Of a stretch of 64,000 nucleotides of DNA, positions 7,932-59,698 are shown one piece after another. Each line of letters begins with the position of its first letter. The stretch's first letter is position 1. A program made the position numbers and the translations under genes. The notes beneath the pieces are model-generated. The model was given only the letters and a program-made list of their open reading frames with translations. It made no database searches and had not been told where the DNA came from. The stretch comes from Sminthopsis crassicaudata (lineage: Eukaryota): the NCBI RefSeq assembly GCF_048593235.1, contig NC_133620.1, positions 294,515,765 through 294,579,764 on the forward strand, given 5' to 3'.

Positions 7932-10900
7932 ATGCTGCCTCTTATCCCACTCTTCGTTCTGGGGCCTTTTTTTACTTCCTTCACCCTGCTATCCCTCACC
8001 CAGGCCCAGGGAGCTCCTGCCCAGAGCCCCAACTACACCAGGTAGGTCTATTTCCACTCTTAATGTACCCTTCCCAATGTCCACAGAATCCAATAAAGGA
8101 ACTCTGCTTTATGGATTTTATATTGCCGGGAAGCCATTAGGTTTTTTTTTTTTTTCCCCGTCTCACCCCTTAACTCCACACACACACTTTGACACCCCCA
8201 TCCTATTTGGCTATTACTTATCCTAAGTGCTCTTTCGTCTTGTTTTGGCTCTCTGGTTCTTTTAAATTTAGTTTCCCATTTGAAATTTCCCTCCTCTCCA
8301 CAGAGCCTTTTGTCTTCTACTTCTTTTTCTCTATCCTTCAACCCCTTATTCCAATTAATGTGACCTGAAAGGAGCAACCTCACTTTTAGAGGATTGGAAC
8401 TTAAGTATTTAAGAGGACTTTTGAAGGGGGATGGGTGGGTTAGAGGGTCAGGAGGAATTGATACCCAAATCCCAGACTTCAGCAGAAGCTGAGACAAGTG
8501 TGGTAGTTAAGGGGAGTTTGATGGCTGGATTGAGATATTGTTGCTTCCTCTCCCCTTAAATCTTATCCCTTCGTTTTAGCAGACTTGTGGCTATATCCAC
8601 ACATCTGGTGCTAGTTAAGTCAGCTGCTAGGCAGGGTAAAGGGAAAGAATTCCAAGAATTCCAGCCTTCTAGCCAGGGTAGGGGTGAAGGACCTTGGGGA
8701 ATGGGAGTAGAAAGGATATTGGGAATAGCTAGTCAAAACTATTTCCTCTGCTTCCTATCCCAGTTGGCTGTAATGCCATTTGCTTTGCTCATTTGCCAAA
8801 CTTTTTACCCATTTCTAGAAAAAACTCTAGTATTATCACCTCTCCTTTTGCAACCTTTCTCCTGCATCTGAGTTTCATCCCCATTTCTTTGTATACTAGT
8901 ACCTCAAAGCTTGACCTTTCCATTCTTAATACATTATTTTTGTTCTGCCTACTCTCACTGATACTGATTACCCACCCCCTTCATTTATGTCTGACCAACC
9001 CCCTAGACCCGTGTTCCTGTGTGGAGGGGATGTGACCGGGGAATCAGGCTACGTGGCAAGTGAGGGCTTCCCCAATCACTATCCCCCTAACAAGGAATGC
9101 ATCTGGACAATCATGGTGAGTGGTCCCCTCTGTTTTGTGCTCTGCCTTTTCAACCATTTCCTACCTTCTGGAACCAGGACAGCTTCTCTTGGGATCAAGT
9201 CCTCCCCTAAGACTTAAAGATCCTTCCTCCAGTCAGGTTCCAGAAAATCCCCATCCTCTCTGCTAATCATCAAACTAGATCTGATTACTGCCTTCTCCCT
9301 ACCCACTCACTCCAAAGATGATGCTTTATTTTGATATATCCTATTAAATCTAGGCCTTAGCACTCCATTAGCATATAATTCCTCATTTAGGATTCTGGAG
9401 TCCTTTATTTTTCTGAAGCTTTTGAATTTATAGAAGTAATGGCTCTTCTTTGCCTTGTTGCTAAAGAATACTCCTGGGCAACAAGATCAAGGGAGTAAAA
9501 ACAAGCCTCATCCCTATCAAAAATGAAGTCTCACTGGCCAAAGAAAGACATCTAGGGATCCCTTCTCTATATCTTGGACCCTGGGACCCCTATATTACCT
9601 TGGCTTAACTGCTAGAGAGGGAAATTTTTGCTTCTTTCCCTGAACTACACCTAATCTGTTCCATCTCCCAATATGACTCCACATAGCTAAGGACAAAGCT
9701 CCTCAATAATGGTGAAGTTGGGAATATAGGTATGAAAAGAAATTAAATCTTGAAGTGTAACCCTTGTCCTCTTTGTCCTTTTCTTTTCTTCCCTAGGTCC
9801 CTGAGGGTCAGACTGTTTTTCTCTCCTTCCGAGTCTTTGACTTGGAATTGGATCCCTCCTGCCGCTATGATTCCCTAGAGATTTTTGCTGGGGCAGGGAC
9901 ATCAGGCCAGCGTCTTGGACATTTCTGTGGGACCTTCAGGCCAGGGCCTGTGGTTGCCCCTGGCAACCAGGTGACACTGAGGATGAGGGCTGATGAGGGG
10001 ACAGGAGGACGAGGCTTCCTGCTGTGGTACAGTGGGCGGGCTACCAATGGCAATGGTGAGATTACCCCTCTCCTCACTTCTCACTCATGGGTATAACACA
10101 TGCCCTGCCACCCTCTATCTTGGGTTCTACCAAAATCCAAAGAGAAAGACAGGTCCATCTCCATGAGATACAAACCCTTCTCCCAAGAGGCTGAAGCCTA
10201 TCCCTGCTAGTATATCCCATACCATATAGAGGGCCTTGTCTCCAGGTTATTATTCTTCTTAATCCCCATCCTCCACCTTGCATCCTCCCCTCTCCTTTTG
10301 TCCTTACTAACTGCTCCTTCAGTCCCACCTCCCCATCTTTTCTATCCTTCCTTTCCCTCCCTCCCACCACCCCCCTCTTCTAGGCACCCCCCCAGGTGCA
10401 AGGCGGAAATGGGGCGCAGACCCACGGGTGGACTGGGCGGCGTGGGGTTACTGGGATGGTGAGTAATTTCCTTAGCCCTTTATGTCCTCTGCAGTTAGAA
10501 CTCACCTAGCTGGGGAGGGGAGGGGGGGAAAGAGAATGAAGAGGTGGGAAGAGGGAGAGAATGGAGAGAATGGAGATGAGGAAGCAGATGAATATATTCC
10601 CCTTGTCCTAAATTATCACTCCCCCCAAACCCAGTCCTAGGATTCTGACCCTATCATCCTTTTCCCATAGCAGAAAACAACCTTTAAAATAAATGTGAGG
10701 ACCACTTGGATCAGAGAGAAGCATTAGAAAAGGCATTCTCCCATTTGAGATGAGAGAGCCCTCAAATGTGTGAAACTTCCAACTGAGAAGACTAAAAAAA
10801 ATCTGGAAGAATTCTGTTAAATTTGGTGTATAAGACTTCCCTTACAGAAGGAAAAAGTGGGAATAAGAGAGAGGAGGAGATTATGGGGAGAGGGAGAGTT

Positions 10901-13084
10901 TGGGAAGTGGGCGAGTTTGAGAAGTGAACCGAGAATACTCCAGCTAATTCCTATCATTTTCTAAGGATGGAGAAGTAGGGAAAATTTGAGGGTGCCTTTA
11001 TGTTGAAAGCCAGGTCCCTACTTTTCTTTACTCTCTTTTTGCTAATTTTCCCCCTCTCCTTATCTCCCCCCAACCCTCCTCCATTCAGGAATCCATATAT
11101 TTGATCTTCCTCCTCCCCCCCCATCCTTGAACACTAGTTTTCCCTCTCCCTGCCCCCACCCCATATCTATCTCTCTATCCAGAGCATCAGTTCTGTGGGG
11201 GTCGGCTGGAGAAGCCCCAAGGTACCCTGACCACACCCAACTGGCCTGAATCTGATTATCCTCCTGGAGTCAGCTGTTCCTGGCTCATCATTGCTCCCCC
11301 AGAACAGGTAACAACATTCCCTAGGCTCTTCATGGGGAACTCAAACATCTGCCTCTCTGCTATATTAATTAGAAACCCAAGTATCTAGTTAGCCAGTTAA
11401 TTTCTATTCTACTAGGTGATTTCTCTGACTTTTGGGAAATTTGACCTGGAGCCAGACACTTATTGCCGATATGATTCAGTCAGCATTTTCAATGGAGCAC
11501 AAAGTGATGATTCAAAAAGAGTGGGGAAATATTGTGGGGACACTGCCCCAAGGTGAGTGGGTAAGGACATTAGAAGAGCAAGTTTTAGTGGCTGGGATGA
11601 AGTGGGGGGGGGGGTGTTGGATCAAATAGAAAGGACCATGACTTAAAAAGAGGGTTGAATGGGTTGGGTAAGTTTAGAAGGAAGAGAGGGAGAAAAGAGA
11701 AGTGGTGGAACAGAGGCTTTTGGAGAAAACTTTGAGGGCATTATAGCTTGGGCACTTCCTTCCCCTGATAACCTACTAACTTCCCTTCCCTCAGTTCCAT
11801 CACTTCAGAAGGAAATGAACTCCTGGTCCAGTTTGTCTCTGATCTCAGTGTCACTGCTGATGGATTTTTTGCCTCCTATAAAGCCCAACCCAGAGGAGGT
11901 GGGAAGGAGGGCATTATTTCCATGGGGAACAACCAACCAGTCCCAGCTTCTCCACAACCACGACCTAAAGTCAAACCACCTACCAAACCCCAGACCCCAG
12001 TCCAAGAGAACTTAAAACCTACCCTTGCCACAGAGTCCGGTAAGCATGATTAAGTTAAATACCAGAGTTTAGGGAGCAGGGGTTTGGGGGATAAGGAAGG
12101 TGTATAAAACAGGGATCTGGGGTCTCGATACTGGACACATAAACACAACTTAGATCTTGGAGGATTGGGAAAGAATGAAGCAAGGCTGGGTGTGGGATGA
12201 GGAAATCATAAGGCTGATTTCCTCCATAGATACTCCTAAGACTCCTTGCCCAAAACAATGCAGAAGAACAGGCACTCTACAAAGCAACTTCTGTGCCAGT
12301 GACTTTGGTAAGCAAGCCAAGAATGAACTCCCTCATACCTCCTGACGGGAGCCTTCTCCTGCTCTTTGCAAGACTTTGTCTTCCTGCCCTCCTCAATACC
12401 TTTCTCTTTCACCTTTCTCCCCCTCTTCTCCCCCCTCCCCTCTCTCCCGTTTTCCATTGCCAATCCTTATATCCTCCCTATCCAAGCTTTATTTCCTACT
12501 ACAAAATAGCATCCTAACCTTTGGTCTATCATGTTAACTTGAGCTATTTTAGTCATACTGCCCACCATATGGAGCCTCCTAATGAGTCCTCCCTATAAAT
12601 TTTATTTTTCTAATCTTTTCCTGTCTTTTTTTTAAAGTGGTGACAGGGACAGTGAAGTCAATGGTTCGAGGTCCTGGGGAAGGCATCACTGTTACCATCA
12701 CCCTCACGGGTGTTTACAAGGCAGGGGCTCTTGGCCTATCTTCCACCTCCACTGGATCCCCACTTAAATTGTATGTACTCTGTCGGCAGTGTCCCCCAAT
12801 AAAGAAAGGTAAGCGAGCTTCTGGAAGAGCTGAATAAAGTATGGGTGGGGGATAACATATTGTGGGTTCCAAGAACAAACGGGAAGGAGACATAGAACCT
12901 CTTGCCTGATTCTCCAACTCTTCCTTTAGGGGCTAGTTACTTGCTGATGGGTAGTGTGGATGAAGAAGGAAGCGCAGTCCTCCACCCCAACAGTTTTGTG
13001 GTACTCTATCGACCAAACCAGGACCAGATCCTTACCAACATGAGCAAAAAGAAGTGTCCGTCCCAGCTTCCAGCCAGGGCCTGA
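7932..13084 (+). CDS. PCOLCE: Procollagen C-endopeptidase enhancer 1 (signal peptide-CUB1-CUB2-linker-NTR), 462 aa; exons 7932-8041, 9007-9115, 9797-10055, 11183-11307, 11416-11552, 11795-12039, 12230-12307, 12638-12808, 12930-13084
   Basis: All junctions are GT-AG and phase-compatible; exons sum to 1389 nt. Translation [71 protein letters not shown]...[29 protein letters not shown]...[18 protein letters not shown]...[11 protein letters not shown] matches PCPE1. Confidence 0.97.
10384..10458 (+). CDS. PCOLCE: Putative alternative cassette exon of PCOLCE (75 nt, phase 1-1, [25 protein letters not shown])
   Basis: Long pyrimidine tract ending ctcttctag, strong donor G|GTGAGT, length a multiple of 3, stop-free in the exon 3/exon 4 frame, CpG-dense relative to the surrounding intron. 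No expression evidence available. Confidence 0.65.
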
Positions 13085-14560: not shown

Positions 14561-16560
14561 CAGAAGGATGTGGGGACTCTTAGTTCCCAATCGACTTTTG
14601 AAGTATACATTCCATCGCCTCTTAAGGTAACCCTATCGGTTCCTCCTGTGTGACAGGGAAGCAATTGTGTCAAGCTCCTGTCACTAGACTCTTTGGAAGG
14701 CTCTAGAGCTTCTCCACAGCCATCATTTGTCATTTTCTCTAATCCCCGTTTCTCCCCTCAACTCCTCTTGAAAGATATAGTATATCATCCGGTCCTCATC
14801 TCTAGCATTACCATGGGGGGGAGGGGAGAGGGACCTAGGGTTGAAACCGGAGCCTGTGTGGTGAGCATATAGGGATATGCTCAAGGCCACATACTTGATC
14901 AGCACCTACTATCCCTATCAAACCTACCAGTTTCTTGGCAGCGAGGGTGTACATGGAGATGCTGGAAGCAGGTGGGGTTGGAGAAAGGGTCAATATGAAA
15001 GTTACTTCACAGACCATCTGACCTAGACCACAGGCTGATGAATTAATCAGGAAACATTAAGGTCCTGCCATTTACCAGAAGAGGTAGGCCCTGCCCCCAA
15101 GAGGTGAGTAATGATGCTAACGTGCTAGGCCCTTCCCTCTTTTCTCTGACTGCTCTACTCTCTAACCCTCAACTGCTTGTCTCAGAATTCTGTCAGTCAC
15201 AAAGGTCTCATTTCCAAAATATATAGAGAACTGACCCTAATTTATAAGAAATCAAACCATTCTCCAATTGATAAATGGTCAAAGGAAATGAACAGACAAT
15301 TCTCAGATGATGAAATTAAAACTATTTCCACTCATGAAAGAGTGTTCCAAATCACTATTGATCAGAGAAATGCAAATTAAGACAACTCTGAGATACCATT
15401 ACACACCTGTCAGATTGGCTAAGATGACAGGAACAAATAATGATGAATGTTGGAGGGGTTGTGGGAAAACTGGGACACTGATACATTGTTGGTGGAGTTG
15501 TGAAAGAATCCAACCATTCTGGAGAGCAATCTGGAATTATGCCCAAAAAGTTATCAAACTGTGCATACCCTTTGACCCAGCAGCGCTACTACTGGGATTA
15601 TATTCCAAGGAAATACTAAAGAGCGGAAAGGGACCTGTGTGTGCCAAAATGTTTGTGGCAGCTCTTTTTGTAGTAGCTAGAAACTGGAAGATGAATGGAT
15701 GTCCATCAATTGGAGAATGGTTGGGTAAATTATGGTATATGAAGGTTATGGAATATTATTGTTCTGTAAGAAATGACCAGCAGGAGGAATACAGAGAGGC
15801 TTGGAGAGACTTACATCAACTGTTGCTGAGTGAAATGAACAGAACCAGAAGATCACTATACAGTTCAACAACAATACTGTATGAAGATGTATTCTGATGG
15901 AAGTGGATTTCTTCAACATAAAGAAGATCCAACTCACTTCCAGCTGATCAATGATGGACAGAAATAACTACACCCAGAGAAAAGGAACACTGGGAAATGA
16001 ATGTAAATTGTTAGCACTACACTACTGTCTATCTACCCAGGTTACTTATACCTTCGGAATCTAATACTTAATGTGCAACAAGAAAATGGTATTTACACAC
16101 ACATATTGTATCTGGGTTATATTGTAACATATGTAAAATGTATGGGATTACCTGTCATCGGTGGGAGGGAGTGGAGGGAGGGGGGATAATTTGGAAAAAT
16201 GAATACAAGGGATAATATTATATATAAAAAAATTACTCATTTACTCATGCATATATACTGTGGAAAAAAATTCTAAATAAAATAAAAAAAAATAAAGAAT
16301 TCTGTCAGTCAACGAGCCCCTTGGAGTAGGATCTCTGGGACCCAGTGCCTCATTTGGGGAGAAGAGAAAGGGAAGAACGGGTGGAACTGCAAACAGTGAA
16401 TATCCCAGACATCTTCAGCCCCAGTATCTATCTTCTCTTACCTTCTGACAGTCTATATGTGACCTACTTCTACTCCTTTTTCTGCATGGACAATTCAGTC
16501 CCTTCTCCCCCCACATCCTACATGATTCTCTGGGACAAATATTAGTGTCTTGAATGCTAG
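14254..16560 (+). pseudogene. MOSPD3: Decayed MOSPD3 (motile sperm domain-containing 3) locus
   Basis: Syntenic slot. 14346-14363 encodes LVPVLV (human VVPVLV). 14411-14428 ctgcgcttcccttgtgag matches the exon 1 end (human TALRFR) but with TGA, and is out of frame with LVPVLV. 16409-16553 holds LLLLLFLHGQFSPFSPHILHDSLGQILVS* (human [29 protein letters not shown]) with upstream frameshifts. Exon 2 and 3 remnants (about 14530-14610 and 14880-15103) are only weakly recognisable. Human sequence recalled from memory. Confidence 0.72.
15200..16295 (+). mobile_element. 5'-truncated young L1 (ORF2 C-terminus + 3'UTR + A-tail) with 16-bp TSD
   Basis: TSD AGAATTCTGTCAGTCA at 15184-15199 and 16296-16311. 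Translation KGLISKIYREL...[19 protein letters not shown]...[16 protein letters not shown] is the L1 ORF2 C-terminal cysteine-rich region. Confidence 0.95.
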
Positions 16561-18903: not shown

Positions 18904-19210
18904 NNNNNNNNNNNNNNNNNNNNNNNNNNNNNNNNNNNNNNNNNNNNNNNNNNNNNNNNNNNNNNNNNNNNNNNNNNNNNNNNNNNNNNNNNNNNNNNNN
19001 NNNNNNNNNNNNNNNNNNNNNNNNNNNNNNNNNNNNNNNNNNNNNNNNNNNNNNNNNNNNNNNNNNNNNNNNNNNNNNNNNNNNNNNNNNNNNNNNNNNN
19101 NNNNNNNNNNNNNNNNNNNNNNNNNNNNNNNNNNNNNNNNNNNNNNNNNNNNNNNNNNNNNNNNNNNNNNNNNNNNNNNNNNNNNNNNNNNNNNNNNNNN
19201 NNNNNNNNNN
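18904..19210. other. Assembly gap (N run)
   Basis: Run of n characters. Confidence 1.
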
Positions 19211-20899: not shown

Positions 20900-21600
20900 T
20901 TTTTTTTTTTTTTGGAAGTACTTATAAAAGACTTCTTTTTTCCAATTTTTTTTCCAAAACATGTATACATGGATAATTTTCAATATTCATCCTTACATCC
21001 TTATTTTTATAAGATTTTTGATTTCCATTTTTTTCTCTTTCCCTCCCCACACAAGATAGCAGTAAGCAATATGATATCTGTTAGGTTATATATGTAAAAT
21101 AATATTAAACATATTTCCACATTAGTAGTGTTACAAAAGAAGAATCAGGACAAAAGGAGAAAACCCCATGAAAGGAAAAACAACAAAAAAGTGAAATAGT
21201 ATGCTTCATTTGTTCAGGTTCCATATTTCTTTGGATATGGCTATCATTTTCCATCATGAGTCTCTTGAAATTGTCTTAAGATCATTGTATTGCTGAGAAG
21301 AGCTAATTCTTTCAAAACTGATCATCGAACAATGGTACTGTTATTATGTATGATGTTCTCCTGATTCTGTTCATTTACCTCAGCATCAATTTATATAAGT
21401 CTTTTCCAGCTTTTTCTGAAATCTGCTTAACATTTCTTATAGAACCATAGTATTATATTCTATTCATATACCATAATTTGTTCAGCCATTTTCCAATTGA
21501 TGAGCATCCCCTTGATGTCTAATTCTTTGCCACCACAAAGAGAGCTTGCTTATATATGTGAGTCCTTTCCTCTCTCTCTTTTTTTTTTTAATAATCTCTT
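20900..21600 (-). mobile_element. Older L1 3' end fragment
   Basis: Poly-T head followed by the reverse of a typical marsupial L1 3'UTR/ORF2 end (gataattttcaatattcatcc..., ccaattgatgagcatcccc...gccaccacaaagagagct). Confidence 0.6.
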
Positions 21601-31827: not shown

Positions 31828-33229
31828 ATTGGGAAAACTGGAAATTAGTATGGCAGAAATTAGATATGGATCCACACTTAACACCATATACCAAGATAAG
31901 ATCAAAATGGGTCCGTGATTTAGGCATAAAGAATGAGATAATAAATAGATTAGAGGAACAGAGAATAGTTTACCTCTCAGACCTGTGGAGGAGGAAGGAA
32001 TTTATGACCAGAGGAGAACTAGAGATCATTATCGATCAGAAAATAGAAGATTTTGATTACATCAAATTAAAAGTTTCTGTACAAACAATACTAATGCAAA
32101 CAAGACTAAAAGGGAAATAACAAATTGGGAAAATATTTTTACAGTTAAAGGTTCTGATAAAGGTCTCCTTTTCAAAATATATAGAGAACTGACCCTAATT
32201 TATAAGAAATCAAACCATTCTCCAATTGATAAATGGTCAAAGGATATGAACAGACAATTCTCAGATGATGAAATTGAAACTATATCCACTCATATGAAAG
32301 AGTGTTCCAAATCACTACTGATCAGAGAAATGCAAATTAAGACAGCTCTGAGATACCACTACACACCTGTCAGATTGGCTAAGATGACAGGAACAAATAA
32401 TGATGAATGTTGGAGGGGATGTGGGAAAACTGGGACACTGATACATTGTTGGTGGAGTTGTGAAAGAATCCGGCCATTCTGGAGAGCAATTTGGAACTAT
32501 GCCCAAAAAGTTATCAAACTGTGCATACCCTTTGACCCAGCATTGCTGCTATTGGGCTTATATCCCAAAGAAATACTAAAGAACAGAAAGGGACCTGTAT
32601 GTGCCAAAATGTTTGTGGCAGCTCTTTTTGTAGAAACTGGAAGATGAATGGATGTCCATCAATTGGAGAATGGTTGGGTAAATTATTGTATATGAATGTT
32701 ATGGAATATTATTGTTCTGTAAGAAATGACCAGCAGGAGGAATACAGAGAGGCTAGGAGAGACTTACATCAACTGATGCTGAGTGAAATGAGCAGAACCA
32801 GAAGATCACTGTACACTTCAACAACAATACTGTATAAAGATGTATTCTGATGGAAGTAGATATCTTCAACATAAAGAAGATCCAACTCACTTCCAGTTGA
32901 TCAATGATGGACAGAAATAACTACACCCAGAGAAGGAACCCTGGGAAGTGAATGTAAATTGTTAGCACTACTGTCTATCTACCCAGGTTACTCATACATT
33001 CGGAATCTAATACTTAATATGCAACAAGAAAATGGTATTTACACACATATATTCTATCTAGGTTATATTGTAACATATGTAAAATGTATGGGATTGCGTG
33101 TCATCAAGGGGAGGGAGTAAAGGGAGGGAGGGGATAATTTGGAAAAATGAATACAAGGGATAATGTTATTTTAAAAAATTACTCATGCATATGTACTGTG
33201 AAAAAAAATTATAAGTAAAAAAAATAAAA
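31828..33229 (+). mobile_element. 5'-truncated young L1 with 17-bp TSD, just downstream of and antisense to TFR2
   Basis: TSD TAAAATCCTCAGTCATC at 31811-31827 and 33230-33246. ORF2 C-terminus MDPHLTPYTKIRSKWV... and [19 protein letters not shown]. Closely similar to the copy at 15200-16295. Confidence 0.95.
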
Positions 33230-36200
33230 TAAAATCCTCAGTCATCGAATAAGTCCATGGAATTAAACGTAGAAATGCTTCCTAAGAAAAGGAATGAAGG
33301 TAGGTAGGAGAAAAGAGAGCTTGTTGGGAGAGCTCTAAGCAAGCCAGGAAAGTGATTTCTCTGGAAAGGCAGGACTATCCTCAGATTCTCTCCATAGGAA
33401 AAGTATTGGCAGACCTGGACCTCCAAGCTCAAGAGAAGGTCCAGTGCACAAAAACAGGATTTCAAGTTGGAAATTGAATCCTCTTCCTCTGATTTTTTTG
33501 GGGGGGTTGGAGGAAGCCAAGAACTTGGGAAAGGGAAAGTGGACATAAGAATGATTGAACAAATAGACCCTCTTCAAAACGAGGTCTTGAATATGTTAGG
33601 GAGCCAGCCCCAGCCCTCTTACCCCTCAGGAGCTGCAGGTGCTCGAGCAAGGGCCTCAGAGTGTGGTCCCCTTGACCAAGGAAGATATGGCGGAATGGGT
33701 AGATTGCTGGTGACATACTGGGATAGGAAGTAGAATTCTATCTGCCACAAGGGCATAGAGAATGATCAGAAAGAAAGCAGAGGATCACTTCTCTTCTTGA
33801 ACCTTACTTTAACCACCCCATCAATATCACAGCTTTAGCCCCTCTCAGGCATTCCTAGTCATTTTCTCTTTGCCTAGGCCTAGTTTTCCCAACTTCCTCC
33901 AATAATTCCCCATAACTCTTTATCTTTCCCAAGTTCCCCTGCTTTTTTTAGAATTTAGAGCTGGAAAAAACCATTGATCATCTAGCAGAATCCTTTTTTT
34001 TTTTTTTTTTTTTTTTTAAATGAAGAAGCCAGAGAGGTAAAAAGATTTGCCTGGTGTCACATAAGGTAATCAAATACTTCTCATTTCCCCACTTGTTTCT
34101 ATAACTACCCTGACCCTCTCTCCCATTTTCCTCATTAACACTTCCCAATTCCATTTAATGTCCCCCTCCACATCCTTAAATGATCTGAGCTTTCCAGGGC
34201 AACCCTCATTAACCATAGCTCAACTCCTATTACTCTTCTAAACCAGTTTTTCCCTGAATGGCTGCAAAATCCAATGGCCTTTTCTCATTCCTTATCCTCT
34301 TTGAATTCCATTGGTTTCTTTGGCATTATTCTTTCCTGATTTTCTTTAATTCTTTAATTTTCTCCTGCCTAAGGGTAGGTGTCTTTCCCTGATTCTTTTT
34401 TCTTAATATTCTCTCTACTTCCATAATTTAATCCCTGTCAAATCTGGATGTTCCCCTAATCTCAATTTTTAATCCTTGACTCTCTTTCTCTTTGTTCATT
34501 CTTCTCTAGTGATCCCAGGTGAGAGAGAAGAAAGATATTCAAGTAGGGAAAGGAGAAAGAATAAAAGAATTGGAGAAAAGAGATGGGAAAGGGGAGGGGA
34601 GATAAAAGCAGGAAACAAAACAGGGAAGTGATAGTGGTGGGATTGGAGTTAGGCACAATAAAGGAAATGAAGATAGGAAAAAGTCAGAGGAAGAGACTTG
34701 GGATGTAAGACACAAAAGCAGAGAAGAGAAGCATTAACAGCAAAAGTTGTCAAAGAATAATACTTCTAACTGAGGTTGCTGGGGTTGAGGCTGCCTATTT
34801 TAGTAATTAGAATGAGGCTAACATGTGAATCTGACTCACTCTCATGATTCGGATATTGTACATTCGAATCAATCTTTCATTGCTCTCTTCTGAACTGTGG
34901 ATCTCCTTTTGCAGCTTCTCAGCTGACCAGATGTAGTCTCCTCGTGCTGAGTAGATCCACTGCAGAGTCAGGCCCGGGCCTAGAGAGTAGAAAGGGGCTA
35001 AAAATAGTGCCAGAGTGCTAAGGAAGTTGGAAGTATAATTTAGGGCCTTTAAGAAATAGAGAAGGTAAAGGCAGGGGATCAGGACACAAGTTCAGAAAAA
35101 TGAAAATAAATAGAAATAGGGGCAGAACCAAGTCCCAAAGGGACTGAAAGTTGGAAATATAGGATCCAGTGAAGAAATCTCAACAATGGCCAGGGACTAA
35201 TATCTAACCTTGAGATCTCCAGAAAACTCATTGAGTCTGTCAATGTGCTTCAAGATGACATCACCATAGCAGCCAAAGTCTAAGGGTAGTAGGTGATCAT
35301 GGCTGAGCCGGATGAGTAGTTGACCTCTTTCACAGGGACACAGAGGGTAAGTAGGGATGGAGTGGGACTGAGAAGAAGAGAAAAATAGAAAAGACAGATG
35401 TTTTCTGTCTTTGGGTCTTGTCATCCTTGTGACCAGGAAGAAATCAAGGCTTTTTTTTTCCCTCCCTGACTTTCCCTTACTCACCCTAGCAGCTGTGCAG
35501 TGATGTTGGCACTGATGGGTTGTACTGGGATACTAGGGAGGCCAGAGGATTCCACAGGTGGGAACTGGAGGGGAAGCCAGGTGTATAGGGGTCCCCTGTT
35601 CCCAAGTGAACCTGTTGGGGGAGTTGAGGCATATCTGATAAGTATAGAAACACAACTGAGCATCTCCCTATTTATTGATAATATATTTATATTTATATAA
35701 TAATATATTATTATATTATATTTATATAGCAATATATTTATATTTATCTCCCTGTTCCCATTCCCCATCCAGTCCTCCTCCTCCTCCATAAATCATAGAA
35801 TCTAGAGAGCATTGGACCTCATTCCTGGTCTTCCTTTCTGATGATGTTAGGGTCCTGAAAAGCAAGAATGATCCTTTGATTCCTAGGTATCCCATACACA
35901 GCTGTGTGGTTAGACAGCCTTAGCTTCCTGTGAGTATCTAGGTGTATGTCAGCAGGATCTGGGTAAATGAGGACACCCAGAGCCCCAAAGGCCTCAGCAT
36001 TCAATACCTAGTATAAAAATAAGGCAACATAATTTTCCTAAATCAGCTTGCATCCAAATTCCCAGTCCTCAGACTCTTTTGAATCCTTGCTATATCCCCA
36101 TGTTTTCCATTTCTGAACCTCAAGAATCCACATCCTGTTTCCTGTACTCCTCATATTTATTTCTCAAAAAAATCTATTTCCAGTTTCTCTATATAGTTCC

Positions 36201-39200
36201 TACTTCTCTAACAGCCACTACTTCTCTCTTTCTTCATAAGTTATTTCCTCTTTCTAAAGAGATTTTTTTGATTTTTTCTATTTTCCTTCCATTGCCTACT
36301 TCCTGCTAAAAACAACAATCAATAATAGCTCACATTATGCAGCACTTTAAGGTTATAGAGTGTTTTCACATCTGCAATCATGAGAACTCTGTGAGGATTG
36401 TTGTTATTCTTCATTAACAGAGGAGGATATTGAAGTTCAAAGAAGTTAGAACTTAGATTTCTCTAAATTCACACAACTGGTGGTTGAAACTCAAATCTAA
36501 GTCTATTGATTCCAAGTCCAAGGCTCTTTCTTATTTCTTTCCACCCTCTACTTTCCACTAGCTTTCTATGATAAGAACTCTAATTCTAGCAAACTTTTTG
36601 GGAGGGAATAGAAGCTGCTGGAATTGTGTTGTCTGTCTCTGTTGCCTGGTTTTGTCCTCCCTTTTCAGTCTTCACTGTCTCAGAGAGATCCCTCACCTTC
36701 TCTGCAAAGTTGACATGTCTTATTCGCACCAATAGCAGGTGCCCTTTGGGGTCCAATCCTTCTCTTGGAGAGTTTCCATATCCTTCAGTCTCCCATAGTT
36801 GGCATAGATGAGTCCTCCCTGCAGAGTCCAGCAAGGCAAACAGCAACCAAATCAATAGCTTCCTCTCCCATCCCCACCCTGATCCTGGCCCTCATATAAG
36901 GGATTAGAAAGATGTAGAACTAGAGGGTAGTACTTCTGCGCCCAAAAGAGACCAAAGGGCACCAGGAGAGGGTTAGGGAGTCTAGAGAACAAGTTTGTCT
37001 GAATCGGTGGAAACGAAAGGGATGTAGGTGGGGCTGGAAAGAAACATCAGGGCCCCAGGAAATCCCCTTACAATAGCACTGCCTTTGGCACTGTAGGGAT
37101 AATAGACATCAGGATCCTCCAAATGTAACTCTCCCAAAACTTTGCCAGACCCATCAACCCAATGCAGTGTGTTTGGCCGTATCCTATAAAGAGAAAAAAG
37201 TCAGGAATCCTCCCATTCCTCACCCTCTTCCTAGTCCCCATTGTTCTACCAGACCATATTCTCTTTCAGAGCAAAGCTGATCAGGTCTAACATCCTCCCA
37301 ACTCACAGGTCTGGAAATTTCAACCCCACATAATGAGTATCCATCCATACATGGTCTAGCTTCTGATGGGAGAACATATCTCGGATCTTGTGAGAAAGAG
37401 CAGTCATTCCAGGGGAACCTGAGAATCGATCCAGCAGACTGATACTTCTGTTTGTGGAGAAAAGGAGGCTGAAGGGCAGACACTTGGATTCTGAGCGAAG
37501 GATGATCATTAAAGGATTAGATATCTGCTTCTTATAAAGAAATGAGTTCTTTTGTGCTAAATCACTCCCTTTCTCAATTCTTTCTCAATTTCCACTCCTT
37601 TTCTTTCACCATTAAACATTCTCAGATCTCCTCAACTCTAAAACAAAATTTCCCTCCATCCTTTGGCTCTCCACAATACCAGCATGCCGTTTACTCCTCT
37701 ATTCACCATTCAACAAAAACTGCCCCTCTAATGCTCATCATCCAAATCTACATTTTCTGAGTCTTTCCAGTCCTATAACTCCAACTACTAGATAAGTAGT
37801 TGGATAAGCCACAAGTTCCTTAAACTGAACATGCCTTGAAACCTCTTCCTGACTTCCCTCTTCTGGTAATAGGGCCACCATACTTTCTTGTGCTTCAAAC
37901 GGCAAATATTTTTCCCCCCATGGGGGAGGAGGGTTTCAGACTTGGGATTTCATTGATGTGGGGAAATCCATCCACTGATAGAGATCATTAATGTAAATTA
38001 TAGCCTCAGAAAATTGTTATCCATTTCTGTTATCTCTGTTCAAACCCTCAGTTTTAGATATGTCATAATTATAACATCATTCACATTTACATATTGCTTT
38101 AAGATTTATAAAGCACCTTTCTCATAGCAAACCAGGAGATTTATTGCAAATATTATTTCCACTTCACAGATGGGTAAGTGAGAGTAAGAGAAGGACCTCA
38201 GAGGTCAACTTTCTACCCAGTGCAAATACTAATTCTACAATTTCCTAGATGATCGATATACTTTTGGTTGAATACTTCTTGTAATAGAAACATCACAGTG
38301 AAATCAATCTATTCTGTTGTCGCACAGCTCTGATCCTTAGAAGTTGTCCTTATAGTGGGCCAAAAGCTGCCTTCCTATAACTTCCATTGTTTAGCCCTCT
38401 GACAGAAGGAAGGAAATAAGCACTCATTAAGCATCTACTCATGCCATCCACTACAAAAATTATCTCATTTGCCAAGTGCTGATATCATACCTATTTTACA
38501 GAAGAGGAAACTGAAGCAAACAGGTAGTAAAAGTGGATTTGAATTTAAAACTTCCTTGCTTGGCAATCTATCTGCTGTGCCACCTAGATGCCTCTTCTAG
38601 TAGGAGATTATGAGTAAAGAGTTGTCCTGGCTGTGCCACTGATATGACTAAACTTTTCTTCCATCATAGGGCACAATATCCCTGAACAGCTAGAGCAGTA
38701 TTCCTGCTAGCAGATTAGCCTAGTCTTGCCCATAGGAAAAAGCCAAAAGGGATGTCAGTTTGGTATGGAGATGAAATTACGAAGGTTAGTGACTGTACAT
38801 AGTTCTTTTAGGAGGCAGTGCCCATATCCAAAGCAGGTCAGGAAGGTTTTGAAGATGACAAATTCCTCATGATGGAGTAGGCTTCATTTGGAGACAATAG
38901 TTCAAGAACTATCTTCACCACATCATATTGTGTTCCCCAGACCCCCAGAAAATCCAACCTACAGAACAGTACAGTAAAAAGAAGGCTGGTTTGCAGGAAT
39001 GGGGGGAAGATGTCTGTAGATCAGGTTCAATCCTTAGTGCTGTCTACTAGCAACCCTCCTTCCATCCCATGCAAGTTATCTAAAGGTAGCTAGTGGAGAT
39101 GGGAACTAGAATCAGGAAGACCTTAGTTTAAAAGTGGATTCAGATTCTTCCTAGCTGTGTGACCCTTGATAAGTCACATACTGCTTCAGTTTCCTCAAAT

Positions 39201-42200
39201 GTAAGATAATAATACCAACTTCAAATCAAATGATATATTTGCAAAACACATAGCACAGTGCTACATACATATTGTGGTAGGTGCCTAATAAATGTTAAGT
39301 TTCCTTCTTTTCTTCCTCATAAGACAGTAAACTCCCCTAGACGTCTTCTTGTGAAAGCTGGAAGATTACTAGCTATAGAAATCATAGAGGGTATTCTTTG
39401 TGAGGTCCAGAGTGGAGCAGATGATCTAAGAAGTTCTTTTGATCTCCAAGATTCCATCATCATTCCTTGATATTGGAGCCCAGGGTTCTATCTCAATCAT
39501 ATTGTAGAAAAGACATTGAATATAAAATAAATGGACTTCATTTCAAATACTGCACAAACACTTATTTATATGACCCATGAAACCTTAATTCATCTTAACA
39601 TTTCTGGGCTTCAATTTTTTCCCCTTTTTATAAAGAGGGGTACTTCAAATCAAAATGACTGCCAGAGACAAGCAGCCCAGTTCCCATATACCTAGTTCAA
39701 ACCTAAAAATTATACCAGATGGCATGATGATAAAAACTCCAATAAGAATTTCTAATATATTATTTCTACCCCAAATCTGTATAAAAGACAGCCAGAAGTT
39801 CTATGGGTAATAGGAAAGGAGGACACCAATCAAAACTAAATCTTATTTAGGTAAACAAAACATCTTTTCAACCCTCAGATCTAGAATCTAGAATCTAGGT
39901 GTCATCCTCAACTCTACCTTCTGTCATCCTCATAGGGGATGGTCTAGCTTTTGATTTTATCTTTGTAACATTTCTTATATGCTTTCTTTCTCTTCTCTGA
40001 GACACCCTGATACAGGCCTTTATCACCTCCCACTTGAACTACTGCAATAGTCTGCTGGTTGATCTGCCTTATTCCACTCCAGTCCATTCTTCACTCAGCT
40101 GTTAAAGTGATCTTAAATCACAGGTCTGACCATGATACTCCCCTCTACTCAATAAACTCAGGATAGAAATAAACTCTTTTTGACCCTTGACTTTCTTCTC
40201 TTCCCAGGCTCCATACTCTACATTCCAGTGATTTGTTGTTCAGCCATTTCAGTTGTGGCCGACTCTTCATGACCCCATTTGGAGTTTTCTTGGCAAAGAT
40301 ACTGAAGTGATTTGCCACTTCCTTCTCCAGCTCACTTAGAAATAAGAAGACTAAGGCTAACAGAGTTAAGTGACTTGCTCAGGGTCACATAGATAATAAG
40401 TGTCTGAGGCCTGATTTAAACTCAAGAAAAAGAATTTTCCTGACCTCAGACCTGGGGCTCTATCTATACATCACCAGTGATACTAGTCTTCTTATTGTTC
40501 CTCAAATAGGAAATTCAATTTCCTGACTAACATTTTCATTAGACATCTATCATGCCTGGATTGCTCTCCTTCCTCATCTCTATCTTTTGGTCTCCAAACC
40601 GATTTAAAATTTCATGTGATGCAGGAAGCCTTTTCTGATTTCCCACTTAAGATTTTAATAGATGGAAGAAAGAGGAGAGTAAAAGGAGTATATTCATTGT
40701 ATAAAGGAGGAAGAATGGGGTGGTACTTGAAGTTTCTCATGACTGAGATTTTTGAGAAAAATGGAGAAAGGGTTACGGGAAGGAGTGGGCATCAGATAAA
40801 CCTCACTCTTATCTGAACCTGACAAAGGAGGAGTGAACACATCACACACAAAGAAGTTAGCATAGACTACATTAAACTTATTAGAAACAGGTGGATACTA
40901 GGAGAGGAAAGTTAAGAGGAAGAATCACACCAGGGAAGGAATCATTTCAAGTCAAATTGTTTTGCATCAGTGGGAAGTAGCTGAACGAATTGTAATATAT
41001 ACCCTGATAAGCTTTCCTTAAAGGAATCAAATTCTAGTTTTTTCAGTCTTTTTATTGCTTGAATTTATCTAGTACATCCTAATATGATTCTTGAATGCCA
41101 GATTTTCTGTTTTCATGAGGGAGACTTCTTGTTGCTTTACCTTCCTTCCTTTGAGTCTCCTGAAACTCTCCCAATATGATAGGCAACGTAGGAGGACCTG
41201 AAGTCAGGAAGACCTAAGTTCAAATTCAGCTACTGGCACAGATACACTATGTAACCTAGGATAGTTAAAAACACTCTACCTCACTTTCCTCATCAGTAAA
41301 ATGGGGATAATCCATTAGCACCTAGGGTTGTTATAAAGCTCAAAAGATTTGAAAAGAGATTAGAAATAAAACACTACATAAATGCTAGCTATTATCATTA
41401 TAGGGTAGCTAGATAGCAAAGTAGAAAGAGTGCCTGGCCTAGAATCAAGAAGACTCATCTTTCTGAGTTCAAATTTGGCCTCACCTCAGACACTTATTAG
41501 CTATGTGATCTTGGTCAAATTGCTTAACCATGTTAGTCTGTTTCCTCATCTGTAAAATGAGATGGAGAAGAAAATAGCAAACCATTCCAATATCTTTTCC
41601 AAGAAAATCCCAAATGGGATCATGAAGAATCCGAAATAATTAAACAATATCATATCAATTACATGTTGATATAATTATTATATTGGATTATATCAATATG
41701 CTTCTGGTTTCTCATGATTTTCTGAATGGTTCCTTCATTTCTTGGGGCTACACAATGTTCCTAGGCATTGAAGTATAGTGGGAAAACATAAGATCTGGCC
41801 ATAGGAGAACTGAGTATGAGTTTGGTTCTATCTTACTAACCATGAATGTAAGGCATGTCTTTTAACCAGAGTTCTCAGTTTTCTCACTTAAAAATGAGAG
41901 CAGCTTGCTCAGAATCCTTCACAGAATTGTTAATTGTTAAATCTTAGAAATCTTTATGGAAATTATGATATTGTGTATTGTTAAGCTATATTTTAGCTAA
42001 AGTTCTGCCAGTGACAGTGATGCTAACATCACCGTGTCAGTAACCTTTGATCTCTTCCTCTCCTCTCTTTCTTCTGTCTTTTACGTAGCCACAAATGGAC
42101 ACTTCTAAAGAATAGGCCATTTCCCTACTTAGTAAACTCCAGTTTACTATTACCGTTAAGCCAAATTCAAACTCCTCTCTTTGACATTTAAAGCCCTTTT

Positions 42201-44199
42201 CCACCTGATTCTAATTTACCTTTCCTACTCCTTCATGAACTCCACAGCCCAATCAAACATCCTTCCTCCTGTTCCTTACATGTATCACTACATACCTTTC
42301 CACAGACTGACCTCCATGCCTGGAAAGTCCTACAAGCACATGGAAATTGTTGATATGGGGGTCCCGAGCTCTAAGTTTTCTCTATGTTAAAGCTCTTCAG
42401 GTCCTTTTTCTCAATTCTTCTGGATTTTTTTTCTTTTAAGAAAATTATTGATATCATTCAGTTTCAAGTCCTAACCTTCACCAGTATACATCTTGCCTGT
42501 AAAGATATTATGAAAATGTTTGCTTAAAATATTGCTGAAATACAAATAAACTATTCTTATAACCTTTCTCTCATGATCTATTAGCCTAATAATCTTAATA
42601 AAAAAAGAAATATAATATTTGGCTCTTCCTTATCTCTTGATATATCAGACTCTATCAGTTGTCAAATCTTGGTAATTCTTCCTTCAAAATATAGTCTTTC
42701 TGGGAGAACAGGTCACATAGGGCTTTGCATCTATGAAACCATAGAAAGCTGAGTGAAAATGTCTAGCATGGAGGCATAAGGAGTGGTACACCTTGCATCT
42801 GGACTACTGAATTAACTTAATCTTATAGATGGTTTTATAATTCTCTCCTGTCATAAAAAGGTAAAAGTTAATAGGGTCCTTTAAAAAAAACAGGCTGGAC
42901 CATGCAGCTAGAGCTGCCATTGCAGCCAGAGACCTAAGAACAGAGAGACAGTCAAATCCAGTTGTCATTTGGCATGAGAGAGGTTTGCCTTGAAAGAAGG
43001 GATACAAACTTCAATTGCCTGGAACCTTGGAGGTTCCAGGAGGAATAAACAAGATGTTCCTGCTTGTAGCCAGAGAAGCAGTGCTGGTCTGCCTGCAGTG
43101 AATTGTTGCATCTTGGAAGACTTCGGAGTCACCTGTTGATAAGCCAGGGTTATGCATCCATTAACCCATAGAGTATGGGACCACTCAGAATGTGGAATGA
43201 GGCTGCCCCTCTTCCCTGAGTTATGACTAAAATATTGGAGCCCAGTAGGTAGGAGTAAGGGGACAGTAATAAATGACAGTTCTCCTTTACAAGGGCTTCT
43301 GGGATGAAGGGGGTTTTGAGGGAAGGTGCTCAGACTCCAGTTCTTTTGGGGAGAAGTCATGTGTGAATCCAGCAATTTAACCTAGATAGTTATTATTCTT
43401 ATAGATATCTAATTATTTTTTTTATCCACACAGAGCATATTTTGGGGATATTAATATATAATATTATACCTCAGTTTATTGTAGCAAATATGATTAAATT
43501 ATAGAGTATTTTTCTTTTGAGTCACTTGAAGCTTAGAATATAAGTTGGAACTATTTGGATAACCTGTGACAAGTTATGATAATTGTCCAAGTAGAACTAA
43601 ATCTCTGCTTCCTTTGCCTATCTTGAGTGATAGGATTAAATTCATCTCATAAGAATCCATCCTCAAGTTATATGTGGAATGAATATCACTATCATCACCA
43701 TCATGTTTACATCTTTATTCCTTTACATGACAACTTCTAAAGATATTATCCCAAACTCAACATTTCCAAAATGGAATTCAACTTTTTCTGAAAAGCAAGT
43801 CTTTCCCAAATAGTTCATTTCTGTTCATGTTAACTTCCTTTTTTCTAGTTTCCTAGACTCCAGACCTAGCAGTTACATTTGATTTTTTCCTCTCTTTCAT
43901 CTCCTATATCCAATCCAAGTTCTTACCAACTCTTATCATCTTACTTTTTCAAATATCTTTATTATTCATCTTCTCCTTTCCTACTACAATTACCTTAGCT
44001 CCGTTCCTCATCACTTTGCACTTTGCATCTACTGTAATAACTTGATCTTAAAACTGGTTCTATAGTCTCTGGGCTCTTTCCACTAAAGTCGTTTCTCCCT
44101 TTCCTGGATATATAATCTGTACATAATGAGTGGGAGAGACAGGAGGAAAACTCAAGATATACCAACTGGTCCTGATTTAATCACTGCCATGTACAATGG

Positions 44200-44204
<5 letters not shown>

Positions 44205-44253
<49 letters not shown>
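44205..44253. repeat. (CT)n microsatellite
   Basis: Uninterrupted ctctct run. Confidence 0.95.
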
Positions 44254-44257
<4 letters not shown>

Positions 44258-44638
44258 GACCTCAAAGGCTAGCTATATTCCCTTATTTTACATATGACAA
44301 AAGTAATCAATATCTGAGGGAAGATTTTGAAGTGAAAACTTGACCCAAATCCAAGGCTTTTCCCACCATACCAAAAGAGCTCTCACTATTGAAGAAGGAT
44401 CATTGAACAGCTGGAAATAATTCAGAAACTGACAATTAGGTTAATGAATCCATATTGTCTGGAGACAATTGAAAGGAACTAGGAATATTTAAACTGAAGA
44501 TTTTAGAGAGACAGGTATATTTAAACTGAAGATTTTGGGGAGACAGGATAGCTAGCTTCAGGCATCTGAAAGGTGTGGATAAGACTGACATAGTACAGTT
44601 TCTAGGAGGAATATAGCAATGATTTTAAGGACCTTATC

Positions 44639-45136
44639 TGTCAATGATTCTAAAGTCTTCCTGCTTTAGAATCAGTGCTCCTGAGGTCCCTCTTCCCACC
44701 CCTGACCTTAGAGTACTACTTTTCTAACAATCTGTCTGTCAATGATTATAAAAATCTTCTGGCCTAGGAATATAATAATATCTCTTCCCTTAGAATTTAA
44801 GATAGATATATTAGGAATCCTGAGGCCCTCTGACCTTAGAGTACTATAGTTCTAAATTTGTCTGTCAATGATTCTAGTCTTACAAGCATTACTAACTGTC
44901 AGATACATAATCTTTTGGTCTGATAACCAAATTTCTGAGACCACTCCTCAGTTCTACCTCTAGGCCATAAAATTAGCATATCCGTGACATGAAGAACTGA
45001 ATAAATTTGTCTCCTTACTCCTGGTGCTTTGCTAAATTCTTTTGGAACTTAGTCTGTTTCAATTGGCATTACAATTATGATAAACTTTGCCTCTTGACTT
45101 GGATATCGGTTCAAGCCTGCAAATTCTTTTGAGACA
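44639..45136 (+). mobile_element. LTR-like element with internal ~130-nt tandem duplication
   Basis: TG...CA ends; repeated ctgaccttagagtacta and tgtctgtcaatgatt units. Family unverified. Confidence 0.5.
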
Positions 45137-45754
45137 TCTAATGACACTGGTCTGAGACCCCCAACATTTAGGAGTCCCTTCTGAACTGATGTAAGCTGTA
45201 TCCTGTATGCACCAGAGAGCTAGACCAGGAATGTATAGGAAGAAGTAAAAAAATTAAATAAGGCTTCATATCAGGAAAAATATTTCTTATGGTTAAAGCT
45301 GTGCAAATGTGAAATAGGTTGCTTCAGGAGGTGTTGAGCTTTTCCTCATTAGAGGTCTTCAATCAGAGGAGATAGCAGTTGAAATATGCTTCAGTGTGAA
45401 GTAATTTTCTTGCCTAAGAGCCTTACAATTTCCAAACTCCTTAATTTTGTATGAGAGGATCAATTCCTACCATGTAGATTGTATCAATTATTTCCCTAAA
45501 AGGCAAGAAAGCTATCCACAAGACTAGAGTGGCCTGGAGGCTAAAGCACAAGTTCTCTGTTGACACAGTTTCTTGCTCTTCTCAGACTATGCTGATACAG
45601 GTTCCTGGAAACCTAAGTGCATAAAAAGGGCTGACCCTCTTCAAAGTCTGACTTATAAGTCACCTCACCCTTCTCTACTTCTCAGATCCATTTTTCTATG
45701 AAGGCAAGAGCCACATCTATCCAAGCTAAGGGATGTGTTCATGTTAAACAGCTT

Positions 45755-45789
45755 NNNNNNNNNNNNNNNNNNNNNNNNNNNNNNNNNNN
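45755..45789. other. Assembly gap (N run) in TFR2 intron 3
   Basis: Run of n characters. Confidence 1.
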
Positions 45790-48700
45790 GACTATGAGAT
45801 TTATGAAGACAGGCAAAGTATCTTCCAGGATTTTGTGAGATTAAAATGAAATACTTGTAAAGTGATTTACAAATTTTAAAGTGCTGTATAAATAGTAGTT
45901 ATTATTATGGTTATCATCATTGTCATCATTATCCACAACCAAGCTGTAATTTGTTTTCTCTTCATTTGGAGGAAAAAATAGTATGTGTGTATTATTCAGG
46001 GAAAGAAAGAAAAGGACATCGATCACAAACACAGATACAGTCAAAATGAAAGGGTAGCAATTCAGCTTTCATTTCCAAGGGAGTTACTAATAGGCAATGG
46101 GAAGCCATTTTTATTTCATGGAGATAGCAGTCATCTGGGCCCAAAACAGTGTACCTTCTGGATATCTGAGCCCTGAGGCCAAGTTATAACTATTTGCATC
46201 TTTGTAGCAATTGCACAGTATATTGTACCCAATTTCTCAGTGAACATTAACTGAGGTGAGGGAAAGTGGACTTCCTGGATACTAAGAATTGAAGTTAAAT
46301 GAGGAGACATTGGAAGAAAAGATATGAGTTTCTGGCTAGGAGAAGTGCAAGATTCTATTTGAAGTGCTAAAGATCCAATTCTGGGTCTTACTGGATAGAA
46401 TTTTTCAGTTGCTCCTCACCCAAGTATTTGTGGAACATCTCCCGAAGGTCAGCCCAATATAGGTTAGAACCACTGGCATCTGGATTCAGATCATAGCCTA
46501 ACTCATCACTCACTTCTGACACAGAATTCTTACAAGAATGGCATGTATCCCGAAAGGCAAAGTAGGCTAAAACGAAGGCTGGGATAAGGAAAGTCAAGTG
46601 ATTAATTTCCTGCTAATGCTTCCTCTTCTTTTCCCTCTTCTCTCAGAACTTGAACTCTTGCCATCTCCCATACGTATGGGTTCCCTCCAGGACTATGTTC
46701 TACCCTCCTTCATTCCACCCTCCTGAGACTGAGGCATTCAAGAAATCAGCTCTTCCCCAATACCATTTACTTCTTCTTTGTTTACCCTTTCATCATTCTG
46801 CTTCTTCCCAATTCAGGACTTGGGAGGCAGACCTGCAATTTTTCCCAAATCCTAGACTTAGCATCTTCCCCCCAGGGTCCTCCACTGTATCATCAGGTCC
46901 TCTCCTCACCTCCCAAACTCATCCCAGTGCCATAGCAGGAAATGTGTGCTCACCCACAACAAAGACAAAGAGATTGATGAGTATACAGTGGGCAATTATC
47001 TTGGGGGTCAGATTCTGCCTCCCAGATTCCCCCTGCTTTTGCCCCTTTTGGTTTGTGGTCCTTAGCTCCATGTTCATGTTGAAAGAAGCTGGATCTTCTT
47101 CCTCTTGCTTCTCATCTTCCTCCAATTGTTTTCCCTGGTTCTCTTCTACTTGTTTGTAGATGGTATAGAAATGGTGGGACAGCTCTTGATTCTGGGAGCA
47201 GAGGGACCTTGAGATGAGTGGATAGATGGACAGAAATCTATGGAAAAGCTTTTGGGGAATTGAGGGAGGAGAGGATATTTCATAAGAGAGGAATGTGAGG
47301 GACAGGACATTGAGATGAGAGAAGATAAAGAGATGGAAAAGACAGGCAGATGGTGTAGGAAAGGAAAATGGAAAAAGACAATGGAGATGAAATGGGGGAA
47401 TGGGCTGGGGGAGGAGAAGAAATGAGGGATAAAGAATGAGGGAGAGGTGTAATGGTGGGATTGGAGTAAGACAGGGGGTTGACAAAAGACAGAGAGATAG
47501 GGGAGGATAGGGAAATGAGGGAGCAAAGAAAATTGAGGGAAGGCAACAAAGCCATAACTATGGTGAGGCAGCTGAGACTTTCTCAGAAACTAGCATCTAG
47601 GGGTACCATTTACTTCCTTGCTGTAATTTGAAGGCTGTCTTGTATTCATCTGTTAACTTGTGCCTTGACCTTACACCTGAGCTTAAGATTTCTTTCTCCT
47701 AGGGACACTTTCCTTCAAAACCTCTCCCTATTACTATCCAGACTAGCCCTACCCCTTCCTAGTCCTTATCTTTCACTGTCTGGCCTCTAGAATCTCTTTT
47801 ATTATGAACAATTTTCCTTCCACATCCTCCTCTCCCCTATTGCTTCCACTTTCTAGAACTCTTTGAAACAAGTTTTCTTGGGATACTCCAGCTTATGGCT
47901 ATCAGAAGTCTATGGAACTAGAAGCCAGATATCTGGAAGGAGACAGAAGCACCAGAGGAAAGACAATCAGGGGTAAGATACTCTACAAATTGGGCATAGG
48001 GATGCATATTAAGGTTGTGAGACAGAATGAGTTTGAGTTGGAGAACAGCATTTCTTCTCCAGCTTCCAAAAGTCTTACCATTTTCCTGAAGAACCCTCCG
48101 AACCCTTTCCATTCCTCTGGTGTCTTCTCGGTGCTGTGCCTGAGGCCAAGCCCTCAAGCCCTCTTAGCTTTAGCAACTAGGTCCTTTCTTCAAGAAAACA
48201 ATTCACTAGGCTTTAACCCCAACTTTGTGGTTGTTTTCACTCTTAAGTGCACACACTTTCCCCTTGGGTTCCTGGGTAAATGAGTTTGTGGGTGGGGTGG
48301 GAAATAAGTCAAACATCAAGAAACTCCACCTCTCTCTCCTCCCACTCCCCACTCCACCCCTTCTCTGCAGTAAAATCAATTTTCTGGGGTAGAACAGACT
48401 TTGACCTTTGGGTCCCTAATGAGAGTGTGGTTGAACATATAGGTACAAGTGAGGGGAGTTGGGATGTGGTGAATTTAGGAGGTTGGCCCCTATTTTCCCT
48501 TCTCCATCTGGCTTCCTCTTCCTATTCAGCCAGATAAGCCTAATACCTTTCCTTGTAAGGTAATTTTCCCACCTGTTCTAACTTCTCCTTTCTCGAAATC
48601 TCTGATGCTTTTTTGGAATCTAAGAGACCGCTGGGGCCCACACAGAAACACCCTCTCCTTCCCTCATCCCATCCTGCCACATGCCTCCCCCCCCCTCACT

Positions 48701-50565: not shown

Positions 50566-59698
<9,133 letters not shown>

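Follow-up and report, generated by a model that had tools for sequence, protein, structure and literature searches.

Transferrin receptor 2 (TFR2) binds holo-transferrin and works with HFE and hemojuvelin (HJV) in the BMP-SMAD pathway that signals to hepcidin. It is also a partner of the erythropoietin receptor (EPOR). Its loss in humans leads to type 3 haemochromatosis, which makes it one of the few genes whose loss gives hereditary haemochromatosis, in addition to its part as a modulator of erythropoietin signalling. Birds are a vertebrate group without TFR2: the gene is listed as absent in zebra finch and chicken and as present in two mammal columns (table in PMC2865498). In the opossum, Tfr2 has been described as the end of a conserved AchE-Tfr2 block, where it serves as a synteny marker only (Zan paper, PMC9275260). 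Here we describe the TFR2 locus in 64,000 nucleotides of contig NC_133620.1 of a Sminthopsis crassicaudata assembly (GCF_048593235.1; the whole of this stretch is referred to as the window). A TFR2 remnant lies on the minus strand at 48112..33561, and we consider it, with a probability of roughly 85%, to be the TFR2 orthologue of a dasyurid marsupial turned into a unitary pseudogene.

The intact TFR2 genes of Sarcophilus harrisii (devil; XP_031821184) and Antechinus flavipes (antechinus; XP_051851954) were used for comparison. They occupy the same ACTL6B-adjacent locus and share the same 18-exon layout with the window copy. However, the open reading frame (ORF) is complete in both, with 796 codons, and their exon sizes do not differ, whereas the window copy carries nine disabling lesions and is without exons 9-15. 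No report of a TFR2 loss in a mammal was found in the literature searched, which was covered in full text with subscription journals outside the coverage. What is new here is TFR2 as the gene that is lost, while the type of event, a unitary pseudogene, is already known.

Identity of the locus and lesions in TFR2

The stop-free segments of the remnant resemble pieces of a transferrin-receptor-like protein. A search of 1.84 billion representatives with the 46-residue peptide of exon 17 (34974-34837) retrieved the 790-aa transferrin receptor protein 2 of a gecko at 80% identity, and the relatives retrieved with this match are the TFR2 proteins of reptiles, amphibians, monotremes, marsupials and placentals. 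Compared with the TFR2 proteins of marsupials, the pieces show their highest identity to that of the devil (79% over 598 aligned residues), the values for wombat, bilby, opossum and monito del monte being 69-71%. A Pfam search with the single exon peptides, which are too short as queries, gave a weak match to the PA domain only and nothing significant besides.

At the nucleotide level, the window is colinear over more than 30 kb with the intact TFR2 loci of Sarcophilus (L001) and Antechinus (L003). The identity is ~93% in aligned bases and 86.9-92.2% in blastn high-scoring segment pairs when gaps are included. Exons of the actin-like gene ACTL6B (51495..58349, minus strand) form the upstream neighbour of TFR2, and PCOLCE, with the domains CUB, CUB and NTR (8930..13081, plus strand), provides the synteny anchor on the downstream side. 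The resulting order is ACTL6B - TFR2 - (MOSPD3) - PCOLCE with TFR2 and ACTL6B on one strand; likewise, a 426-aa actin-family gene is located directly upstream of TFR2 and on the same strand in the devil, antechinus and koala loci. The order in the window also matches that of human 7q22 (FBXO24, PCOLCE, MOSPD3, TFR2, ACTL6B). Since the remnant is flanked by ACTL6B and PCOLCE and is colinear with the devil and antechinus genes, we identify the locus as the TFR2 orthologue and not as a stray copy.

Lesions were mapped by aligning each of the 18 Sarcophilus TFR2 coding exons with their flanks to the window, and the 18-exon structures of the coding sequence (CDS) of devil, antechinus and koala were derived from their proteins and loci. 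Exon sizes are identical between Sarcophilus and Antechinus, and the koala agrees for exon 1 and exons 4-17. As the sizes are constant in the intact marsupial genes, the changes seen in the window arose on the window lineage. Nine independent disabling lesions were found, all of which are polarised to this lineage by the three intact outgroup genes. They comprise four small frameshifts (+1, -1, -1 and -2), a frameshifting deletion of 13 nt, a 12-nt deletion that takes the donor of exon 7, the 2.87-kb loss of exons 9-15 and part of exon 16, and the loss of the 3' end with the stop codon; several of them result in a premature stop. An uninterrupted 18-exon ORF with canonical splice sites is not present.

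In the 5' part of the gene (all exons of the remnant are on the minus strand), exon 1 (48079..48112, ATG at 48112-48110) measures 34 nt compared to 33 nt in the intact genes. Because of this +1 near 48099, the canonical frame stops at codon 38, within exon 2 (47114-47112). The following four exons keep their AG/GT splice sites. Exon 2 (46954..47191, 238 nt) has an in-frame 3-nt deletion in a poly-Glu run, while exon 3 (46392..46578, 187 nt), which encodes the transmembrane segment, exon 4 (37307..37447, 141 nt) and exon 5 (37072..37183, 112 nt) are full length. The last base of exon 3 (46392) is an A compared to a G in the devil (CCG/gt to CCA/gt), a change that would weaken the donor, although the GT itself is kept. 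In exon 5, Cys229 is replaced by Tyr at a site that is occupied by Cys in Sarcophilus, Antechinus and koala.

From exon 6 onwards, every exon that is still present is damaged. Exon 6 (36697..36818, 122 nt) has a 1-nt deletion at 36757/36756 with a resulting TAA at 36722-36720. In exon 7 (35892..36007, 116 of 120 nt), a 12-nt deletion takes the last 4 nt of the exon plus GTGAGTCT, and with it the GT donor, while exon 8 (35485..35611, 127 of 140 nt) has a 13-nt deletion at 35569/35568. The 2.87-kb deletion has its junction at 35326..35334, where a 7-nt filler, GTGAAAG, is found at the join and the Sarcophilus sequence from 23105 to 25977 of L001 is without counterpart. This deletion took exons 9-15 together with 110 nt (36.7 codons) from the start of exon 16, the remnant of which (35209..35326) consists of the last 118 of 228 nt with the GT donor kept. 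Exon 17 (34840..34979, 140 of 141 nt) carries a 1-nt deletion at 34976/34975, and its incoming frame reads GCC CGG GCC TGA, with the TGA at 34970-34968. The exon 18 remnant (33561..33741) shows a 2-nt deletion at 33716/33715, and its last 81 nt (26 codons and the stop) were lost via a deletion of ~350 bp, the junction of which (33561/33554) displays TATTT microhomology.

The initial annotation, which had been made from the sequence alone and had called TFR2 inactivated in this marsupial, agrees with this map to within a base or two, and all lesions that it listed were recovered. It had described the length and TAA of exon 6 as given above, with the -1 at 36758-36759, a difference that reflects alignment ambiguity; an exon 7 without its donor, which the 12-nt deletion across exon end and GT explains; a 127-nt exon 8 with a 13-nt deletion near 35567; the absence of exons 9-15 and of the first ~37 codons of exon 16; and the 140-nt exon 17 with its in-frame TGA, as also seen in the exon alignment. 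For exon 18, the 2-nt deletion near 33715 corresponds to that at 33716/33715, and the terminal loss was correctly noted, but its extent had been put at about 30 codons. The +1 in exon 1 was missing from that list.

The consequences for the protein were assessed with the full-length gecko TFR2, which matches the window in tblastn only at residues 85-363 and 625-750, while residues 364-624 and 751-790 have no match in the whole 64 kb. In devil TFR2, the domains PA, Peptidase_M28 and TFR_dimer span residues 244-320, 411-610 and 667-737, respectively. The Peptidase_M28 part is without counterpart in the window, and the PA and TFR_dimer parts are out of frame. With the Peptidase_M28 domain lost in its entirety and a frameshift in each part that is left, the window TFR2 cannot encode a full-length receptor, nor can it yield an ectodomain that binds transferrin and dimerises.

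Several further features were observed in and around the remnant. In intron 17, at 33855-33859, ~540 bp of the devil sequence (L001 27445-27988) are absent at a site with ACTAG microhomology, which may stem from a deletion in the window or from an insertion in the devil. Intron 3 contains a perfect (TC)25 microsatellite (44205-44254), and intron 7 an AT-rich tandem array (35669-35747) just upstream of exon 8. Two very similar C-terminal fragments of L1 ORF2 are located on the plus strand at 15307-15897 and 32246-32647, the second just downstream of the TFR2 remnant. They have a run of peptide sequence in common, and each aligns at ~84% to a repeat that flanks the devil gene.

Constraint on the surviving codons

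To compare the selective constraint between lineages, substitutions were polarised with koala as the outgroup in 498 comparable codons. The window branch has 29 nonsynonymous and 14 synonymous substitutions, corresponding to an omega (the nonsynonymous to synonymous rate ratio) of ~0.61 (95% confidence interval ~0.30-1.25, binomial for 29/43). On the devil and antechinus branches and the dasyurine stem taken together, there are 10 nonsynonymous and 24 synonymous substitutions (omega ~0.12), and the contrast between the window branch and these dasyurine branches is significant (Fisher's exact p=0.0013). In exons 1-5 alone, 17 nonsynonymous and 5 synonymous substitutions were counted (omega ~0.9). 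Constraint on the spared exons 2-5, which had been considered as a possibility, was ruled out by this value, and we see no sign of it in the sequence. The surviving TFR2 codons evolve almost neutrally, the undamaged exons 2-5 included.

The retained TFR2 CDS contains 7 small indels in 1.54 kb, compared to 6.4 per kb in non-coding sequence of the same branch, the latter rate being obtained from three-way distances. As the indel density is near the non-coding background, the TFR2 exons have been drifting in the manner of intronic sequence over most of the branch. Taken together, the relaxed constraint and the near-neutral indel density show an apparently long-standing decay.

Assembly quality and alternative explanations

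Two runs of N are present in the window, one at 18904-19210 (307 N), in the intergenic stretch between MOSPD3 and TFR2, and one at 45755-45789 (35 N). The second is an assembly gap inside intron 3, within a repeat resembling a short interspersed nuclear element (SINE). It is separated by 603 nt from the donor of exon 3, and exon 4 follows ~8.3 kb further downstream. The flanks of this gap are colinear with intron 3 of Sarcophilus (up to 12307 and from 12669 onwards in L001, with the end of exon 3 at 11697 and the start of exon 4 at 21053) and align to intron 3 of Antechinus at 12332 and 12684. Coding sequence hidden in this gap was ruled out, as the region is intronic in both relatives; because no TFR2 exon of either relative maps there, the gap has no effect on the frame calls. 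No N run abuts any of the TFR2 lesions, and the junctions of the large deletions carry filler or microhomology, which is of the end-joining type and not that of repeat collapse.

ACTL6B served as a control for the local quality of the assembly. In 12 strongly conserved blocks, exons included, a comparison with the devil revealed zero exonic indels; 10 of the 12 blocks differ by 1-4 mismatches only over 116-244 nt, and all gaps lie outside the reading frames, being found in polypyrimidine tracts, in flanking intron sequence or in conserved sequence other than exons. Because the ACTL6B exons in the same window are without indels, the TFR2 lesions are best explained as decay and not as assembly noise, and the assembly looks locally sound.

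Some observations nevertheless weigh against a unitary pseudogene. The confidence interval of omega is wide (0.30-1.25), the evidence comes from the DNA of one assembly of one individual, and copy number was seen within the 64-kb window. The lesions include three 1-nt indels that fall in short runs (G4 to G3, T3 to T2, and G to GG), a type that noisy long-read assembly can yield. Moreover, the ORF that spans the junction between intron 8 and exon 16 was found in no independent public assembly, since a collection of 5.8 billion proteins returned only exon 16 pieces of other mammals. The single assembly, the three short-run indels and the gap in intron 3 could be taken to indicate that the lesions come from mis-assembly or consensus errors, or from a deletion allele segregating as a rare null haplotype, in a species that keeps a working TFR2. 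We regard this as very unlikely in view of nine lesions of differing kinds, including deletions of 12, 13, 350 and 2870 bp in sequence free of gaps, with junctions that are clean and carry filler or microhomology, while the ACTL6B exons a few kb away are free of indels. The nonsynonymous excess likewise argues against consensus error, because indel-type errors cannot create such an excess, and a young null allele would not bear so many independent hits.

A truncated product with some function, either an N-terminal membrane-anchored stub of ~220 aa or a regulatory RNA, would be in line with the preserved length and splice sites of exons 2-5 and with an in-frame internal Met in exon 2 (47077), which could open a frame of 220 residues that runs to the TAA of exon 6. 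However, the canonical start is frameshifted by the +1 in exon 1, the ratio of 17 to 5 in exons 1-5 is that of nearly unconstrained sequence, and a Cys common to the three intact marsupial genes is replaced by Tyr. Furthermore, it is established that a stop such as that of exon 6, with more junctions downstream of it, would as a rule expose the transcript to nonsense-mediated decay, and the stub would be without all ligand-binding and dimerisation domains, so that such a function is hardly to be expected. The least probable explanation in our view is that the ancestral locus decayed after a duplicate or retrocopy had taken over, with TFR2 function persisting elsewhere in the genome. It has no positive support and draws on the window covering 64 kb only, whereas the other marsupial TFR2 genes are found at the ACTL6B-linked locus wherever their DNA was seen, and a search of the protein collection yielded no third dasyurid TFR2 protein, whether intact, partial or of low quality. 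A second TFR2 copy is presumably absent. The several independent disabling mutations at the ancestral locus and the relaxed constraint on the lineage are what characterises a unitary pseudogene, and on this preferred reading the orthologous TFR2 between ACTL6B and PCOLCE would have been inactivated by accumulated independent lesions, leaving an animal that would regulate hepcidin and erythropoiesis without TFR2.

Extent and age of the loss, and comparison with known systems

A survey across marsupials showed that intact TFR2 is annotated in 11 other species, two of which are dasyurids: devil, antechinus, wombat, koala, tammar wallaby, brushtail possum, sugar glider, opossum, agile gracile opossum, bilby and monito del monte. 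It is also annotated as intact in every other mammal among the matches of two protein searches. Since the 11 other marsupials have the intact gene, the loss is specific to one dasyurid lineage, the one represented by the window, and is not a marsupial trait. The natural knockout proposed in the initial annotation is thus supported as a loss of TFR2, but it has to be narrowed to this lineage and does not extend to marsupials generally.

The substitution distances are 6.95% between window and devil, 6.60% between window and antechinus and 4.99% between devil and antechinus, which places the window outside the devil and antechinus clade with a node-depth ratio of ~1.36. Published estimates date the split between Dasyurinae and Sminthopsinae to 20.6-28.6 million years ago (Ma) and crown Dasyurinae to 16.7-22.9 Ma, a ratio of ~1.25, while the numbat/thylacine node at 30.7-42.9 Ma would correspond to ~1.85 (Kealy and Beck, PMC5715987). 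Under a molecular clock, the window lineage most likely has a sminthopsine position (dunnart, planigale, ningaui or kultarr), as its ratio is close to ~1.25 and far from ~1.85.

For dating the inactivation, the omega of the window branch was taken as a mixture of 0.12 and 1. This suggests that TFR2 has been inactive for roughly half of the branch, on the order of 10-15 million years (My), with an interval from a few My to the whole branch, and the indel load points to the older end of this interval. An inactivation that covers roughly half or more of the ~21-29 My of the lineage would be old, and hence the loss would be fixed and the lesions probably shared with related species. A more far-reaching proposal, which we put forward tentatively and consider somewhat doubtful, is that the loss of TFR2 goes back to the early history of the sminthopsine dasyurids (dunnarts, planigales and relatives), over 10 My ago, and that the entire clade is without the gene. 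The sensing of transferrin-bound iron and the tuning of erythropoietin sensitivity would then follow a route independent of TFR2.

The only TFR2 visible in the window cannot make this receptor, and the lineage would live without TFR2, possibly with the compensatory rewiring that the initial annotation had anticipated. If true, the existence of a mammal with an old, tolerated and lineage-specific knockout would demonstrate that TFR2 is dispensable for maintaining the hepcidin set-point. Devil and antechinus with the gene and a lineage without it would form a comparative system for compensating changes in HFE, HJV, BMP6, TMPRSS6, TFRC, ERFE and EPOR. If the loss is indeed clade-wide, the laboratory-bred dunnart would be a natural mammalian model of the HFE/HJV-BMP-hepcidin axis without TFR2. 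In a dunnart, as an animal bred in laboratories, the physiology would be directly testable.

With regard to known systems, the lineage would resemble birds as a natural vertebrate lineage without TFR2. In contrast to birds, where the gene is simply lacking, a datable pseudogene is present here at the ancestral locus, within a clade of mammals the near relatives of which have retained the gene. The loss of function concerns the same gene as in human type 3 haemochromatosis and in Tfr2-null mice, and lesions of the frameshift and truncation class are established as pathogenic in people. However, the haemochromatosis and mouse alleles are disease alleles in species that depend on TFR2, whereas the window lineage looks like a case of old, tolerated, lineage-wide loss. 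In comparison with mammalian unitary pseudogenes generally, the window TFR2 shares the preserved position, the multiple disabling mutations and an omega rising towards 1, and it does not differ from them in kind.

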